Shown one piece after another: positions 54,394 to 64,000 of a DNA stretch of 64,000 nt. The DNA lies in NCBI GenBank assembly GCA_020891255.1, contig BQFW01000013.1, positions 124,001-188,000 of the forward strand. The letters are read 5' to 3'. The DNA is from Entomortierella parvispora E1425 (lineage: Eukaryota; Fungi; Mortierellomycota). The translations under genes and the position numbers were made by a program. The notes under the pieces are model-generated. The model saw only the letters and a program-made list of their open reading frames with translations, had not been told where the DNA came from and did not search any database. The first letter of the stretch is position 1. Each line of letters begins with the position of its first letter.

Positions 54394-55965
54394 TCATGCC
54401 GTGTGGTGGCTGCGACCAACTCCACGAGGATGGGCCAAAATCCAATCGGCAGCAAGATCGGCGCGAACGATACAATGCTGACCAGCACCGGGGGGGAGGT
54501 CTGTGAGGCCGAGTACAGCGACCAACTTGGGCCAGTGGGTGCTGAACCACTCCAGCTCAGGCGCGCCGATCCGGTGCGCGGTCCATCGGACGTCAAGAGT
54601 GCGCATCGCCTGCATGTCACGAAGCAGGTCAATGCCCGACTCAAAGGAGAACATCAAACAAGATGTTTGATATCCTCCATGTCCTTCTCCGACGCCACCT
54701 GGAATCGGCGCCCTTCTCTGCCCCAGACGCAGGAGCTGGAGGTTGACCAAAAGGCCAAGCTGTTGGTAGACGACTGTATGCTCGACTTGGCTTGGCGGGG
54801 AGAACTCGTCCCTCTCATCGAAGGCGGGGTAGAGACATTCGACGGCTATCTCCAAATGGGTCAATGTCAGTGAACAGCCCCACACTTGGGTCGGGCCATC
54901 AAGGTCCAGCACCCAAGGCAGGTCGTCCATCAGGCCCGCTCCGTCATGGAAATGATGGGATCTGATCCTCAAGTGGCCTTGCTCCAACAAGGTCGAGGGC
55001 AGAGCGCAGAACTCCCTCAGCCTAGTAGCCCTCTCAAGGAAAGACTGAACGTCGTTGCCAAAAAAGCCGAAAACGCCATCTAGAGTAATCGACTCTGAGG
55101 TTGCCCCACTCCTGGCAAGGGAGCCGAGACTCTGAACATTTGGCACCGCGATGGTCAGCTTCTTGGCATGCCCCCCGAGAGCCAACATCTGGTCCAACAC
55201 CCATTCGCCAGCCTGGTTGGCTTTCCAGGTCAGACTTTGGAGATTCCCTACGATCGCCATGATATTCGTTCTGGACTTTTCGCAAAGTGACCAGTCACCA
55301 TCAACGTGAATCGTAAGGGCCGCCAGGTTGGGACTAACGCTCAGTAGATCAACAATCCTATCGATGGAACCCCTTAGACCACTGAACGACATCTGCTTCA
55401 CGTTCGTCAGTCTAGCAGGTCCGGACAAGGATTCGACATAGAACTCATCAATCATCACAGGCTCTTCGCGAATGGTCAGCCCAGCGAAATCCAGATGCAG
55501 CTCAGAAAGACATCTGCAGTGAGAAAAGAGACTCAAGGTGACCGTCCAGTCATAGTATCCATGCAGAGCGACGCGGTCCAGGAACGGACTATTCATCGTC
55601 AAGGCACGAACTAGCTCCAGTGTACTGCTCGCGGAATCTCTGAAACTGCGTTGGAAGCCAATATCAAGGCAGCCCAATCTCGAGCATCTGGCTTCGTTTA
55701 GCAGTGTGCCGTGCTCCAGCCCTTGTCCAGTCACAAAGGAGCGCGTGAGCTGACCGTTCTCCGCGAAGAGCCTCTGCACAGAATCCAAATCCAATAACCC
55801 GGCCTGACTCTCACTAGTCAAGTCGAGATCCCGGAACAGATAGGGGGCCCACACTCGACGTAGTCCTCGGCTGACTCTTGTGCATGCTGCAATGTCGTGC
55901 ACGGAGAGATAGTCGGCAACAAGTCCAACCAACTCCAGTGGAAGCAAGCTGAATAGGACGGACAT
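54394..55965 (-). CDS. F-box/LRR (RNI-like) protein
   Basis: ATG 55965. F-box LLPLELVGLVADYLSVHDIAACTRVSRGLRRVWAPYLFR; C-terminal VYQQLGLLVNLQLLRLG...FSFESGIDLLRDMQAMRTLDV...ELEWFSTHWPKL, a pattern I recognise from expanded Mortierellaceae F-box families. Confidence 0.88.
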   Translation of the reverse strand: MSVLFSLLPLELVGLVADYLSVHDIAACTRVSRGLRRVWAPYLFRDLDLTSESQAGLLDLDSVQRLFAENGQLTRSFVTGQGLEHGTLLNEARCSRLGCLDIGFQRSFRDSASSTLELVRALTMNSPFLDRVALHGYYDWTVTLSLFSHCRCLSELHLDFAGLTIREEPVMIDEFYVESLSGPARLTNVKQMSFSGLRGSIDRIVDLLSVSPNLAALTIHVDGDWSLCEKSRTNIMAIVGNLQSLTWKANQAGEWVLDQMLALGGHAKKLTIAVPNVQSLGSLARSGATSESITLDGVFGFFGNDVQSFLERATRLREFCALPSTLLEQGHLRIRSHHFHDGAGLMDDLPWVLDLDGPTQVWGCSLTLTHLEIAVECLYPAFDERDEFSPPSQVEHTVVYQQLGLLVNLQLLRLGQRRAPIPGGVGEGHGGYQTSCLMFSFESGIDLLRDMQAMRTLDVRWTAHRIGAPELEWFSTHWPKLVAVLGLTDLPPGAGQHCIVRADLAADWILAHPRGVGRSHHTA

Positions 55966-58900
55966 CGTAGAATATCTGATTAGGAGTGCCGAAATAATTA
56001 ATAACAGTTTGTTAATAAGGCGCAGGGAGAGGAGGCATCGAGTATTTTGTGGTGAAGGAGATGAAGCCGTTAAAACTGAGAGAGGGAACACATACCTGAA
56101 GTTGGCTGGAAACGAGTTTTAATCAAGGTAAGAGTCCCAAGGAGAGGAAGGACAGAAAACAACAGAACGGCAGGCTGGCCTAGCAGTGAGAGAGGGAAGA
56201 GAGGGGAAGAGGGTGTGCGTGAGTGTGTGTGTGAGTACTCAAGTGCTGGCACGGAGATGGTGTGAAGAGGTCGTGCCCTATGAGGATGAGCAGATTGTGA
56301 AAGGGAACTAACATACCTGTGCTTGGAAGAGAGGGTGTGTGCGCGTGTGGGTGCTTGAAACAAAGCGCAAGGAGGTCGAGGAAGCCGAGGTCTGTAAAGC
56401 GTCTGGCTGGGGCGCAGGCGTCTCTGAAGGCCGAAGAGGTGGGTGCAGAGACGGGGGCAGAGGAAAGAGGGTGTATCGCAGTGGAACTTTGGGAAAGAGC
56501 TGAGGAATGGCCGGGGGTGTAAAGGGGAAGCTGAAAACTGAGCAAGAGCGCGATGAGGATGTTCTCTGGAAAGAAGGCGAAAGAGCAAGCAGAAGAGAGA
56601 ACGAAGAACACAAAAAACAGAGAGAGAGAGAGGGCCAAATATATGGCCGATGTCGACGTCAATCCACCATGGCAACAAATGTCGCATGAAAAAAAAATAT
56701 TGAATAGAAAATAATATAAAAAAAAATGGTTCCTCGCCGAAGCAGACAGGCAAGGACCATGTGAAAATAATCATAGTGCCATCGAAGGGTAAGCTCTATT
56801 CCAACGAGGCTGCTTGTATCTTGGCTGGGCCATGTCCTGGATCTGCATTTTATTCTTTTTTTTTTGTCTATCTGTTCGGACCAGCGACCAGGATCTTGAC
56901 CGTCCTTGTAAATGTCGGAGGTACTCTGCCCCAAAGGGACACCAGTGTGGTCATGAAGAGGGATCAATAGAAGAGGTTGTGAGGGAGATGAATGTATCGC
57001 GATGGACTGTGATGCCCGCGTTCTTGTATCGCTTCATGAATGAAAGGAGAATAGCCTCTTCAAAGGGTCCGGCTGCATTTCTTCCTCGCTGTACATTATT
57101 GTACCATTCCAAAATGGCAATGAAGGCTGATCCACCTTCTGGTTCTCGTCATACCCTGTTGTTCCGAAGTAGCTTCGATGGTGGGCAGAGGAACTCCAGA
57201 TGACGACAGGTCGCTATATTTTGACATGGACTCGACAACAAAGACTCACAACCACAGCCTCGCTTCCCTCAGGATGGCTGCCAGTGAGGGACCAAAAATC
57301 AGACATGGGAGAAAGAGAAGCGTCAACTCGGCCTAGTTCATTCAATCAGAGGGATGCATTCGAGTTTTATTGCAACATTTCTGTTGCAGTCAAACTCTTC
57401 TTTCGATGGCCCGTGGCTGGCAGTTGTCCTTCTTGCCTATTCAACATCTGCAACAAAGAGAAGAGGGACAAGAAGAGAGACAGAGAAATGGATGGATCAG
57501 GAGCGAGAACCAGAGAGAAGGAAAGAGAAAAAGCGAAAAGATGGAGGAGGACCATGGTCAGATTTACTGTCCGCGACAAGCACCTTCAGAATAAACTCAC
57601 TTTGGGCTGACATCTCTCTCTCTCCTCCGTCCATTTTTCAAGTTTGCTGTGCATGGTGTCAGTTCTCTCCAGCAGGCGGAGGTGTTTAGAGCCTCGCAGC
57701 CAGAATTCATCTCCTTGATGCAGAGGAATGCAACGTCGAGCACAGATCAGCCTGTCGTTGCTTCCAGAAGGCCGTTGGTGTTATGAAGTCCTTCCTCTGG
57801 ACTACAGGTGTGGTGTGGAAGAGAGACTGACATGGACCCAAGGAAAAGGAGCCCACCACAGGGAGAGAATACCGGGCACATGGTTTCATCGTTGCATCGG
57901 TCTCTCTTCACGGAGAAGCGAGCACAAACAAAAGGGCCTGTGCATCGATTGTCACAGGGAGGGAAGGGAGGACGGACCCTCTTTTTTTTTATTTTTTTTT
58001 GTTGTGAGGGAAGGGAAGGGAAGGGAATGACGAGGGAGGGAGTGGCTGGGTGGGACAGAGTGCGACAGAGTGTGAGAAAGGACACAAAAAGGCGCGGCAC
58101 TTTTTGACTCTTTTCTTTTCCTTTCTTCTTTTCTCTCTTCTTTCCTCTCTTCTTCACACACACTGAACCGTTCCCGCCCCTCACCTGCCTTTGATCGCCA
58201 CACTACCTCCGTCAGTTCGAATCCTTTGGATGCTGCGTCTTTCCTGGCTCGATCAAGAAAACAACAACTTGGGTCCTGTTCTGTTTGAATATTGCATTGT
58301 TCCTTGTTGCTGTTGTTTGTTGCTTTTGTCATGGGCCCAAGTCTGTTGCACCCCTCTTGTCAGACACTGCACCCCTTGTCCCCCCTTCCCCAGTACGCCT
58401 TGATGCTCTATGGTACGCCTCCTCGACTTGCAGTTGCGGAATTCAGTGAGGCAAAGCTTTGGCCGGGAGGCTGAGGAGGTCTATTAACACGGCCAACTTG
58501 GAGTACTGCGGGTGTATACCGCTGCTTGAGGGTTACCAGGTAAAGTATAAGGTAGGTGGGGTGCGATGGCCTGCCGCCTGCTCGTTGGCGCGCCCTGCAC
58601 AGCTCTGTTCTTCTTTTCTGGAGAACAAGCTGACTGAGAGCAGGCCTGTTTGATTCAAATAAATGGATGTTTACTCTTAACAGAAAGTACTTCGCCAGGC
58701 AGGTGGACCACGAAGGAATATTGAGGTGAGCCTTTGCGGGGAGAAAGTCTGTGGCACTTGGTATGTGCGTCCAAAATCATGCATGGCATTGTTCATTCGC
58801 TTATTACATTCCTTCATTCCCTCATTCGTTCCTTCATTCGTTCCTTCATTCATATTCATGAGAGCGATTAAGGGAGACAGCCACTTTTTTTAAAAAAATC

Positions 58901-60382: not shown

Positions 60383-62860
60383 TTAGACAAACATCGACTC
60401 GGCCTGTGACAAGGTCAGACGGTAGTTGGGATCCAACACCAATAGTCCCTCCACCACCGAACGCTCTCTTGGATCATTGATATCGCTCAAACGGTCCTTC
60501 CAGGCATTAAACCGTCCTGTCGCGGCCTGGTCCGCAGCCTCCTCTGTCCTGAACAATGGCTGACCCGTCAAGACCTCGAAAAGCACACATCCTGCTGCCC
60601 AAGCATCCATCGCCGTCGTCGCCAATGTGGTGTCCAATTGCTGCTCCCGACGAGCATTCAAAAGCTCAGGTGCAAGGTTGCGCTCCACGGTGCCATTCTC
60701 CTGTCCAATCAAAGATCCCTGACGGGGTCCAACAGCCTCGTTTAAGAACCTCGATCCACCAAACGACCAAAGGACCCATTGACCTTCCTCGTTCATCACC
60801 AGCGATCCTGTGCAGATTGACAGATGGACAACATCCTTCTCATGACACCACACCAAGCCACGGAGCAAGGCCTTGGCCACCGCTACTTGATCCGAGCGCT
60901 CCAACAACCGGTGCTGAGCTGTCGACAACATGAAATCCAAGGTGGACTCGTGTGCATCCAGGACCAAGATATGGCGCCACTCGAGCGCGGCTGGAATGAT
61001 CATGGTCTGATGCAACGAAATGATCTTGGACGGGTTCACAATATGGTTCAACATGGCTGCCTCGCGCTGCCACACAATCTCGTCGCGGACCCACTTGAGC
61101 GTCACAGATTCAGCCGTGTCAACGTTCTCACCCAACTGAATCACCACCATCCTGGAAGAGACAGCGGTTTGACCGAGACGGTATTGGGACAACACCACGG
61201 CGCCCAATGGTGCATTCGGCACTGACTGAGCCACATCCCGACCAGCATAGCGAACGATGGGCACACGCAGCGTCAAGTTCTCCACGGGACGGTCGACAGA
61301 GACACTGTTCTGGTCACGAGGGGTGGTAGCGCTTGTAGTGGCCTCGTCATTCAAGAGCGAGTGCGTAGAGGCAAAACGTGGCTGATAGTTGCCCATACCC
61401 TGACCTCCCTTGGCATGCAGATCCCGGACGGCCATGTCCAGTCCATCCTGTTCCCGAGCACGCTCCTCAATCTTTTTGTTGCGTCGGTGGAACAGGACCA
61501 CAACGGCCATCAGAATGACCAAAGCGGCCGCTCCAACAGCAATTCCGATGATGGCTGGTGTCGACAATCCTTTGCTGGACGAATCGGGCGAGGGCGGTGC
61601 AGGAGGGGAATACACTGAAAAGGCTCCAGAGGTCTTGTCTGCAGCCAGGATGGTGTAGTTGCTGAAGTCCTTTCCAGCCTGCGTGCTGACAGTGGACAGG
61701 CCAAAGCTCCAGGTATTGTTCACAGGGTCCGCCAATCCTCCGTAGAGGAGTCCGTATGAGGTGGCGAACATGGTCGCTGTAGAATAGTCATACAGATGAG
61801 GCACTTTTCCTTCTGCATCCGAAGGGTAGGTTCGAGTCGAATTTTTGAAAAGCGTGGTCGAGTTGACTCCGAGGGACGCCGTGATGGTGTACTAGTAAGG
61901 AAGTAAAAAAAAAAAACCACAAAAAGACGTGTTGAAGTCGCGTTTAGTTTCTCCGCCCTGTCTCTCTGATTTTCAAATCTTCCGGTTTCTCCGCAAAAAG
62001 GCGCGTTTTTTTTCGTGGTACAGGAGAAAGAATGAAAACATACTGGGCTGTTGCTTCCAAAATAATAATCGTTTACGCTGTCTGAAGCATGGGCAATGGC
62101 TCCAAACCCAATGTAGGCCAAATCAGATGTATACAGAGCAATGTTGGTAGATGCGGTGGCTCCCAATGTAAAGCGAGCGACAGTAGTGGTAGAGGCCTTG
62201 TTGTAGACGACCACAAAGGAGCCAGTGTTCTCACGGATGATTGAGAAAATTCCTGTGGAAGGAACATCTTGAGGCACTTGACTATTGTTTAGAACAAGAA
62301 AAAAGAGTATTCGTTAATATAAAAAAAAAAAGATCAGAAAAGAGCCATCTGCATTCTTGAATAAAGTCCGACTGCACTCACGCTGGAGTAGGTGCAGAGA
62401 CGCCAGTAGCAGAGATATTGATAGTTGTCCAGTTGCCGTTGTTGAGACCCAACCACTCGAACTGTCCTGGCTGTCCCTGGACGGGCCACGCGACCTGCGC
62501 GTTCAAGGCCCGGCTGGCGTCCCAGGATCCAATGGGCTGAGGGGTGGCCAGGGAAGAATTTTGAGCATTGTCGAGGTAGACGTTCTCGTTAAAGATGTAA
62601 AGGAAGGTGGCCGATTCACTGTCAACAGCACAGACCATGCGACTCGTGGCCAAAGGTGTAGCGGTCCTGACGGTTTGCGAGAGAGGGGCAAAGTTGACAT
62701 TGGGGCTGGTGAAGTGGCCGCTGTTACTGACAGAGTACGACTGCAGGGCATAGGTGCTGTTGGCTGCAGACGCAGCGTACTCGAGTCCTACCAGGAAGAC
62801 CGAGTCATCCGTGGAGGCGAGACAAGGGTATCCCAGGTTGGGGATGTTGCTCTGTGACAT
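60383..62860 (-). CDS. Single-pass transmembrane receptor-like pseudokinase (about 741 aa from ATG 62860; true start may be upstream, e.g. in-frame ATG 63106)
   Basis: Exons 62860-62382, 62281-62044 and 61891-60383, all in frame. Beta-rich ectodomain, P/S stalk, TM AIIGIAVGAAALVILMAVVVLF followed by HRRNKK. Kinase fold: VTLK, QREAAML, HLSICTGS, WSFG, LAPE, DAWAAGCVLFEVLTGQPLF, LDPNYRL. Confidence 0.88.
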
Positions 62861-63852
62861 GATCACGCTCTCTAGAGGAGATGGATGAAGGAGAAAGATG
62901 AGATGAGGATGAAGAGTAGAGAAAGAGAAAGGGGACGAAAAGAGAAAGAGAGAAAGAAGGAATGCAATTAGACTCGAGTAGAGAGTGGGAACAGCAGAAC
63001 AGAAAAAGACAAGGAACAAAAGGCAAAGTGGGAAGAAGAATACAAAGGAACAAAGGATTGAACTGAAGGAGGGAAACAGATGGATGCCATGCAAACAATG
63101 GGACATGCCCACCCGCCCGAGACCATTGTTGTTCCTCAGCCCGAAGAGAAAGGGCTGGGCTTTGACGTGATAGTAGTCATTGTGGACACAGCGCCACCGA
63201 GGGGAGAGAGGCGGTTCTTTCGTTTAGAAGGAGATACTGAGGAGAAGAAGAGAGAAGAGAGAAGAGCAAAAGGAGAGAAGAGAGAACAAAGAGTGGAATG
63301 CCATTCCTCTGACCGACTGCAAGGAGCCAAGGTCCATCGCGGTCAAAGGGCACGCGCAAAGGAACAGACAAGCCGAAAATAGGGACTGTTGTGCCTGTAC
63401 CTGGATATTATTATTAATTATATGGAGAGGGAGTATTTTTGGAGCGGAACAGGTGAATATATGTGATGTGTGTGTACGAATGAGAGGAGGGGATGAAGGA
63501 AGTGATCAATCAGCAATGTGTGTGTGTGTGTGTGTTTGCCGAGTGGGGCCAAGGGAAGGGGGCGAGATGGAAGAGGAAGGAAGAAGATGAGGATGTAGGG
63601 ATGCGGGATGGAGAGGGAGGATGGACGCAGGGGAGAAGGAAAGAAAGAAAAGAAAGAGAACAGAGAAACGGGCACAGGGGGAGAAGCGTGTTTCTTCTTT
63701 CACTCGGTCTGAAAGGCATTCCGGCGACAGGGCTGGAGGAAGAACAGAAAGAGAGAGCACTGAGATAGAGGAAGGTGCTCTCTCGATGAATGGCTGGTTG
63801 ACTGGTTGACTTGGGTGCTCTCAATCCTTGTTTTCTCTTTTTCTCTTTTCTG

Positions 63853-63902
63853 TTGATGTTGCTGTTGCTGCTGTTGCTGCTGTTGCTGCTGCTGTTGTTG
63901 TT
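63853..63902. repeat. Imperfect (CTG/TTG)n microsatellite
   Basis: Directly visible, next to a minus-strand GTGAG donor-like site near 63912; probably in the 5' leader or an intron of the receptor-like gene. Confidence 0.85.
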
Positions 63903-64000
63903 CAGGGCTCACCGTCCTTTTTTTTCCTTCTCTTTTTGTTTCTCTTTTTCTCTTGTTCTTCAGATGGACAGCTCTCTCCAGGGCATGGCCCTCTTCTCTT

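Follow-up and report, generated by a model that had tools for sequence, protein, structure and literature searches.

A 64,000-nucleotide stretch of contig BQFW01000013.1 from the fungus Entomortierella parvispora E1425 (assembly GCA_020891255.1, positions 124,001 to 188,000 of the forward strand; hereafter the window) carries on its minus strand a real gene for a single-pass membrane protein that is confined to the family Mortierellaceae. The 741-residue product combines an N-terminal β-propeller, a Pro/Ser-rich stalk, one transmembrane (TM) helix, a juxtamembrane region, and a C-terminal kinase-like domain in which the catalytic motifs are replaced (Table 1). We give a probability of roughly 0.5 to the reading that the protein is a membrane sensor, with a putative N-out type III helix, a predicted ligand-binding propeller, and a pseudokinase that would signal as a scaffold.

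In the arrangement proposed here, the helix would act as a reverse (type III) signal-anchor that keeps the pseudokinase cytosolic and exposes the propeller on the extracytoplasmic side of the membrane. A glycan, a peptide, or a wall component would be the ligand of the propeller, and the pseudokinase would serve as a docking or allosteric scaffold. The mean column identity among orthologs is 81% in the kinase-like domain and 48% in the propeller, and at the sequence level the pseudokinase is under strong purifying selection. A dead kinase domain that evolves this slowly suggests that cytosolic partners, themselves conserved, use it as a platform, and a faster-evolving propeller that is low in charge and rich in Ser, Thr, and Asn suggests an exposed ligand-binding module.

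A protein family restricted to the Mortierellaceae

When the exon 3 product served as query in a word-index search, 43 relatives were returned, all of them from Mortierellaceae and assigned to Mortierella, Linnemannia, Podila, Actinomortierella, Lobosporangium, Dissophora, Gamsiella, Gryganskiella, Entomortierella, Lunasporangiospora, Modicella, and Haplosporangium. There is apparently one copy per genome; where a species gave two hits, the locus-tag prefixes differ between them, and such pairs probably reflect different assemblies. Full-length orthologs span 709–797 residues, the best full-length identity to the window product being 75%. Database and exhaustive profile searches gave no close relatives of either domain outside Mortierellaceae, and a literature search found no description of a propeller–TM–pseudokinase family, in agreement with the first-pass annotation, which had proposed the family as undescribed.

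That annotation had also raised the concern that ectodomain and kinase exons might lie on separate transcripts. Six Logan contigs (SRR6256836-41) carry the whole 747-residue open reading frame (ORF) of the ortholog from Mortierella sp. GBAus27b (P0015) without interruption. Since the genomic gene of P0015 has a 100-nt coding intron that is absent from these contigs, they represent spliced RNA, and in this ortholog the propeller, the TM helix, and the kinase part thus reside on one transcript.

Public records name the orthologs (P0007, P0008, P0011, P0012, P0013, P0016, and others) as CDK5, CDK12, CDK20, MAPK, polo-like kinase 3 (PLK3), or “negative regulator of the PHO system”. Because the orthologs are membrane pseudokinases, these names are transfer errors; the CDK20, CDK12, MAPK, PLK3, and PHO85-like annotations are wrong and should not spread. 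One 709-residue model, from Podila epigama (P0043), lacks the otherwise invariant N-lobe segment from MVVIQLG to QREAA, a gap that is more likely a mis-called intron than a real deletion.

The N-terminal propeller

The first-pass annotation described the ectodomain as rich in β-strands and possibly a propeller, and structure prediction bears this out. An AlphaFold2 (AF2) model of the ortholog N-domain, based on 28 orthologs, has a predicted local distance difference test score (pLDDT) of 90 and a predicted template modelling score (pTM) of 0.89, and is all-β with about 24 strands. Foldseek matched the model to KLHDC10, KLHL12, LZTR1, KLHDC4, and yeast Kel2, with TM-scores (template modelling scores) of 0.5–0.6 at 10–15% identity, and the best fold matches in the PDB, Swiss-Prot, and the Atlas are all Kelch propellers. 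On the strength of the model, the N-domain is a six-bladed, highly diverged Kelch-type propeller, with six four-stranded blades as in KLHDC10, KLHL12, and Kel2, which are themselves soluble cytosolic adaptors.

The divergence is pronounced at the sequence level. Pfam gave no match to the N-domain even at E ≤ 1, the Kelch profiles included, and an exhaustive profile search, run over 1.8 billion representative sequences, recovered nothing but orthologs, their exon fragments, and two weak matches. One of these (P0053) is a bacterial CHAP-repeat protein and probably spurious; the other (P0054), a weak match at 1.9e-4, is a genuine Kelch protein that also has a hydrophobic N-terminus, a stalk rich in Thr, and a TM helix. 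With hhalign, the Kelch motif is recognisable in one blade only, at 36% probability, where the hydrophobic-GG...W pattern is kept. Two invariant cysteines, Cys13 and Cys77, occupy the small-residue position of the inner strand in blades 1 and 2, respectively, and may be packing residues and not a disulfide pair.

Membrane topology and subcellular location

The TM helix is the sole 19-residue Kyte-Doolittle peak in the protein (2.98). The stalk, the 22-residue helix, and the HRRNKK cluster that follows it are present as first described, and the juxtamembrane region, earlier put at roughly 100 residues, comprises about 95. The basic cluster reads H/Q-R-R-N-K-K across orthologs. Further along the juxtamembrane region, the motif ASTHSLL is conserved, if not invariant, and ENLTLRVPIVRY is near-invariant; AF2 places a helix, with low confidence, over the first 26 residues.

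In 28 of 28 proteins the 15-residue flanks of the helix carry a net charge of −2 to +2 on the N-terminal side and +2 to +6 on the C-terminal side. Charged residues account for 9–16% of the N-domain and 22–24% of the C-terminal part, whereas Ser and Thr together make up 18–27% and 10–14%, respectively. Eight N-x-S/T sequons were counted in the window N-domain, in line with the earlier count of at least eight, and among the orthologs the sequon density is about three times higher in the N-domain than in the rest of the protein. By the determinants of Wahlberg and Spiess (1997, PMC2139883), the N-terminus is more readily translocated when the anchor is long and very hydrophobic and positive charge lies on its C-terminal side. 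Because of the flank charges, the contrast in charge and Ser/Thr composition, the sequons, and the faster evolution of the N-domain, we favour an N-out, kinase-in topology of the type III, reverse signal-anchor kind, which we rate as moderately probable.

The protein was first described as type I. It has the single TM helix of that class, with positive charges on the C-terminal, presumably cytosolic, side, and it lacks the signal peptide, the supposed N-terminal extension being non-coding (see below); type I is therefore not supported. The first-pass annotation had also held that the proposal would fall if the protein had no route into the secretory pathway. The missing signal peptide bears on this point, yet N-out insertion by a reverse signal-anchor is still the likelier outcome.

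Several observations weigh against the proposed membrane sensor. The N-domains contain 190 sequons where composition-preserving shuffles lead one to expect 130, a modest excess in data that are phylogenetically non-independent, and sequon positions are only moderately conserved. N-terminal folding opposes translocation (Wahlberg and Spiess 1997, PMC2139883), and a propeller of about 350 residues, made before the anchor emerges, would be an unusually large domain for type III export. The nearest structural neighbours of the propeller (KLHDC10, KLHL12, and Kel2) are cytosolic. For the cytoplasmic region, AF2 with a 25-sequence alignment reached a pLDDT of 46 and left the N-lobe unmodelled. Finally, no RNA run was listed for the window organism itself, and four runs with the same species label gave no junctions, yielding one 481-nt contig from a relative and stray low-complexity matches.

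Even with the propeller out and the kinase-like domain in, the protein could reside in the endoplasmic reticulum (ER), the Golgi, or the vacuole, as a luminal sensor or quality-control factor resembling Ire1 and PERK. No sorting signal was identified in the window protein, its protein-language-model neighbours include plant IRE1-type clusters, and of seven transmembrane kinases that were tagged in Trypanosoma brucei, five were located in the ER (PMC8519429). Such a factor would nevertheless lack a KEN/RNase or other output domain, and its dead kinase would be incapable of the trans-autophosphorylation by which Ire1 and PERK signal. A low-charge ectodomain rich in Ser, Thr, and Asn, together with a Pro/Ser stalk, is moreover typical of fungal surface proteins. 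We regard residence in the endomembrane as rather unlikely, while a sensor-scaffold located either there or at the cell surface is what the evidence as a whole favours.

An inverted, type II orientation would make the propeller a cytosolic, membrane-anchored adaptor and the kinase-like domain a luminal one, possibly an atypical kinase comparable to POMK. The absence of a signal peptide fits this orientation, as does the position of the propeller, which begins at residue 1 and is fully made before the helix emerges, and the obstacle to translocation posed by N-terminal folding (PMC2139883) and the cytosolic Kelch adaptors among the closest folds point the same way. Against it stand the invariant basic cluster, which in every ortholog follows the helix on its C-terminal side while the N-terminal flank is neutral, the 9–16% of charged residues in the N-domain compared with a cytosol-like 22–24% in the kinase-like domain, and the apparent derivation of the latter from the CMGC group, whose members are cytosolic or nuclear. 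We are also aware of no transmembrane kinase whose ePK domain is external (PMC8519429). The type II orientation is accordingly judged improbable.

The kinase-like domain

The C-terminal domain matches Pfam Pkinase (PF00069) with 62.2 bits against a cut-off of 31.7, compared with 24 bits for PK_Tyr_Ser-Thr. It had been called a complete kinase fold. The score well above the cut-off upholds its assignment as a kinase fold; completeness is less certain, as the match is limited to profile positions 45–257, from αC to the end, and the N-lobe failed in the AF2 model. No Pfam match to the KEN/RNase domain (PF06479) was found, and the protein ends just past subdomain XI, so that the earlier exclusion of Ire1 is upheld.

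The degenerate motifs listed at first (HLS, ICTGS, and SFG), as well as APE, are all present in alignments with Pho85, CDK12, and the orthologs. In 25 of 25 aligned orthologs the Asp of HRD is replaced by Ser or Ala, the catalytic-loop Asn by Ser, and the Asp of DFG by Ser, and at most one of the three glycines of the Gly-rich loop is left in any ortholog. Across these 25 orthologs an intact activation segment with APE is kept without change, and long stretches of the domain are likewise invariant. The Lys of VTLK, earlier taken as the β3 Lys, is invariant; hhalign, with low confidence, instead places β3 at VVIQ. The VTLK Lys lies 11 residues before the αC Glu, a spacing shorter than in canonical kinases. 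With the HRD Asp, the Asn, and the DFG Asp all lost, canonical phosphorylation is very unlikely, in keeping with the inactivity first predicted, and the alignments indicate that the dead catalytic state is ancestral and conserved.

The alternative of an atypical but active enzyme working through non-canonical residues, that is, a true receptor kinase, could draw on the invariant VTLK Lys, the retained αC Glu, the intact activation segment and APE, and an extreme conservation that is compatible with an enzyme. It would have to account for the loss, in every ortholog, of the HRD Asp, the Asn, the DFG Asp, and two of the three glycines, and we consider it very unlikely.

With respect to origin, a profile search of the PDB gave CDK12, p38, and Pho85 as best matches, and over all searches CDK12/13, CDK16, and CDKL are also among the closest sequences. 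Apart from PAK6 (STE group) and one chain whose name does not mark it as a kinase, the top 60 PDB matches are CMGC kinases, and neither Ire1 nor PERK figures among the best. The CMGC affinity agrees between single-sequence search, profile search, and profile–profile comparison, where hhalign aligned columns 76–364 to CDKL at 98% probability. The next-best database matches beyond the family are likewise CDKL proteins. An αF-region pattern, D-x-W-x-x-G-C...TGQPLF...DQ, is shared with CMGC kinases and nearly identical to that of fish CDKL3, and the CMGC-insert region, as we read the alignment, is much shorter here. The best database score falls from at least 399 bits within the family to 42 bits outside it, which together with the CMGC best matches points to a lineage-specific, very divergent CMGC derivative. 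The label of a “plant/animal-style” receptor kinase is not supported in this respect, since the domain is nearest to CMGC kinases and not to TKL/IRAK/Pelle or animal tyrosine kinases.

Gene model and translation start

The three minus-strand exons first proposed join in frame at both junctions (62382/62281 and 62044/61891) through GT..AG introns of 100 and 152 nt, and over each of these junctions the spliced product aligns collinearly with the orthologs (Table 1). The coding intron of P0015, of phase 0, lies at the same place as intron 2 of the window, to within one codon of alignment uncertainty. In exon 1, 50 of the 89 mismatches to the nearest relative, a metagenome contig (L010), fall at one codon position. 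The 481-nt contig, from run X4, is about 91% identical to window positions 60696–61157, with differences mainly at one codon position. This level of identity implies that the species label covers diverged lineages. The RNA data come from an ortholog, and the start and intron 1 of the window are hence supported by comparative evidence.

Table 1. Features of the gene and its product (window coordinates; aa, amino acid residues)
Feature	Position	Strand	Residues (aa)	Remarks
CT-rich leader, non-coding	62861..63106	-		Read earlier as an 82-aa extension
Start codon ATG	62858-62860	-		Homologous Met begins all full-length orthologs
Coding exon 1	62382..62860	-	1-160	Last codon split (phase 2)
Intron 1	62282..62381	-		100 nt, GT..AG; in-frame stop directly past donor
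Coding exon 2	62044..62281	-	160-239	
Intron 2	61892..62043	-		152 nt, GT..AG, phase 0; position matches P0015 coding intron
Coding exon 3	60383..61891	-	240-741	Stop at 60383-60385
Six-bladed Kelch-like β-propeller (predicted)	61607..62860	-	1-334	Split by both introns
Pro/Ser-rich stalk	61556..61606	-	335-351	
Single TM helix	61490..61555	-	352-373	22 residues; conserved in orthologs
Juxtamembrane region	61205..61489	-	374-468	Starts with HRRNKK (61472-61489)
Kinase-like (pseudokinase) domain	60386..61204	-	469-741	Pfam Pkinase 6.7e-17
Lys of VTLK, candidate β3 Lys	61094..61096	-		Assignment uncertain; invariant in orthologs
HLS replacing catalytic-loop HRD	60818..60826	-		Aligned to HRD of Pho85 and CDK12
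SFG replacing DFG	60758..60766	-		Aligned to CDK DFG; invariant in orthologs
APE, end of activation segment	60665..60673	-		

Translation was initially placed at 63106, whereas the comparison of sequences places it at the ATG at 62860. Full-length orthologs begin with Met-Ala (or similar), followed by 2–8 variable residues and a conserved I/V-P-x-L-G-Y-P-C, and their Met corresponds to 62860. The 82 residues upstream are not conserved among orthologs, and the leader of the window differs from that of L010 by many indels with lengths that are not multiples of three. Transcripts of P0015 have an in-frame stop two codons 5′ of the ATG and a 370-nt 5′ untranslated region (UTR) without any AUG, and the Gryganskiella ortholog has an in-frame stop 17 codons 5′ of the ATG. 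The 246-nt in-frame leader is a CT-rich tract over which a second frame is open as well; CT-rich DNA rarely contains stops, and the open frame from 63106 to 62860 therefore means little. From the upstream stops in orthologs and the unconserved, indel-rich leader it follows that the extension is non-coding and that a signal peptide is absent from the protein. No hydrophobic core was seen within residues 1–40, and the first propeller strand starts from about residue 9.

A classical type I receptor that starts at 63106 and uses the hydrophobic 82-residue extension as signal peptide is scarcely credible: the frame is open, the extension contains TM-like hydrophobic segments, and an in-frame ATG with a hydrophobic stretch lies upstream in the nearest relative too, but most frames of this CT-rich DNA lack stops, the two extensions are unrelated in sequence, and the ortholog stops together with the non-triplet indels argue against the signal peptide.

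Some further observations were made around the leader. At the P0015 locus (L001), positions 2266-2932 form a 667-nt 5′UTR intron relative to transcripts L003-L008; 68 nt separate the end of this intron from the ATG. In the window, L010, and L009, a pyrimidine tract that terminates in AG lies 12–20 nt before the ATG, and might be the equivalent of the acceptor of this intron. Further upstream in the window, an ORF at 63700-63912 (minus strand) opens with about 18 consecutive Gln/His residues, after which comes a Lys/Glu-rich stretch, and the upstream DNA is CT/GA-rich and of low complexity. About 4 kb downstream of the gene, a 565-residue ORF at 54394-56091 (minus strand) combines an F-box-like N-terminus with leucine-rich repeats; the downstream neighbour of the ortholog at L001 is also F-box-like, but on the opposite strand.

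Comparison with other systems

The plant receptor pseudokinases BIR2 and STRUBBELIG (SUB), of the RLK/Pelle family, have a similar layout, in which a single TM helix and a juxtamembrane region connect an ectodomain to a catalytically degenerate kinase domain that is thought to be a scaffold, the role proposed here. Unlike the window protein, they have a cleaved signal peptide, a leucine-rich-repeat ectodomain, and a TKL/IRAK-like kinase domain, in place of a Kelch-like propeller and a domain nearest to CMGC kinases. In animals, PTK7, ROR, and RYK are also single-pass proteins with an inactive kinase domain, and RYK-type clusters are found among the protein-language-model look-alikes of the window protein; they differ from it in their tyrosine-kinase-group domains, their Ig, Fz, or WIF ectodomains, and their signal peptides. 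As far as the sequences tell, the likeness to plant receptor-like kinases and to PTK7/ROR is one of convergent architecture, with no homology past the kinase fold. Fungi have been described as lacking architectures of the receptor-tyrosine-kinase type (Kiss et al.).

As is proposed for the window protein, Ire1 and PERK couple a luminal sensor through a TM helix to a cytosolic kinase domain, and Ire1 is known in fungi. The window protein differs in having no KEN/RNase domain, no signal peptide, and a dead kinase. Another parallel in domain composition is Tb927.5.3150 of Trypanosoma brucei, for which a signal peptide, Kelch, TM, and kinase segments are predicted (PMC8519429); it likewise places a Kelch-type propeller and a kinase on a membrane protein, and the predicted signal peptide is not matched here. 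A ciliate Kelch-kinase cluster of the Atlas, without membrane evidence, is among the language-model neighbours. Database and profile searches detected no sequence relationship to the trypanosome and ciliate proteins, which belong to unrelated lineages. The CMGC kinases CDK12/13, CDKL3, p38, and Pho85 provide the best sequence matches, yet at only about 40 bits, and they differ from the window protein, in which catalytic residues are lost, the insert region is shorter, and the domain is tethered to a membrane.

Implications

As judged from sequence comparison, the layout would represent a new, convergent case of a receptor pseudokinase built from different parts, a CMGC kinase and a Kelch propeller. 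Its significance is tempered by a secretory route that we infer, by a link to plants and animals that is architectural only, and by the restriction to one fungal family. That the Mortierellaceae independently invented a cell-surface receptor, with a Kelch-like propeller exported by a reverse signal-anchor, a CMGC-derived pseudokinase scaffold, and an undescribed perception pathway, is a tentative proposal, which we regard as possible without expecting it.

The family is conserved in every sequenced genus of the Mortierellaceae, apparently as a single copy, with its pseudokinase under extreme constraint, and it indicates that fungi, too, can evolve receptor-like architectures, in this case apparently by joining a CMGC-like kinase to a Kelch propeller. 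It also offers a natural test case for the export of a 350-residue N-terminal domain without a signal peptide. If the proposed topology and ligand are true, the protein would provide a new signalling route in this group of soil fungi and a fungal counterpart of the receptor pseudokinases of plants and animals.

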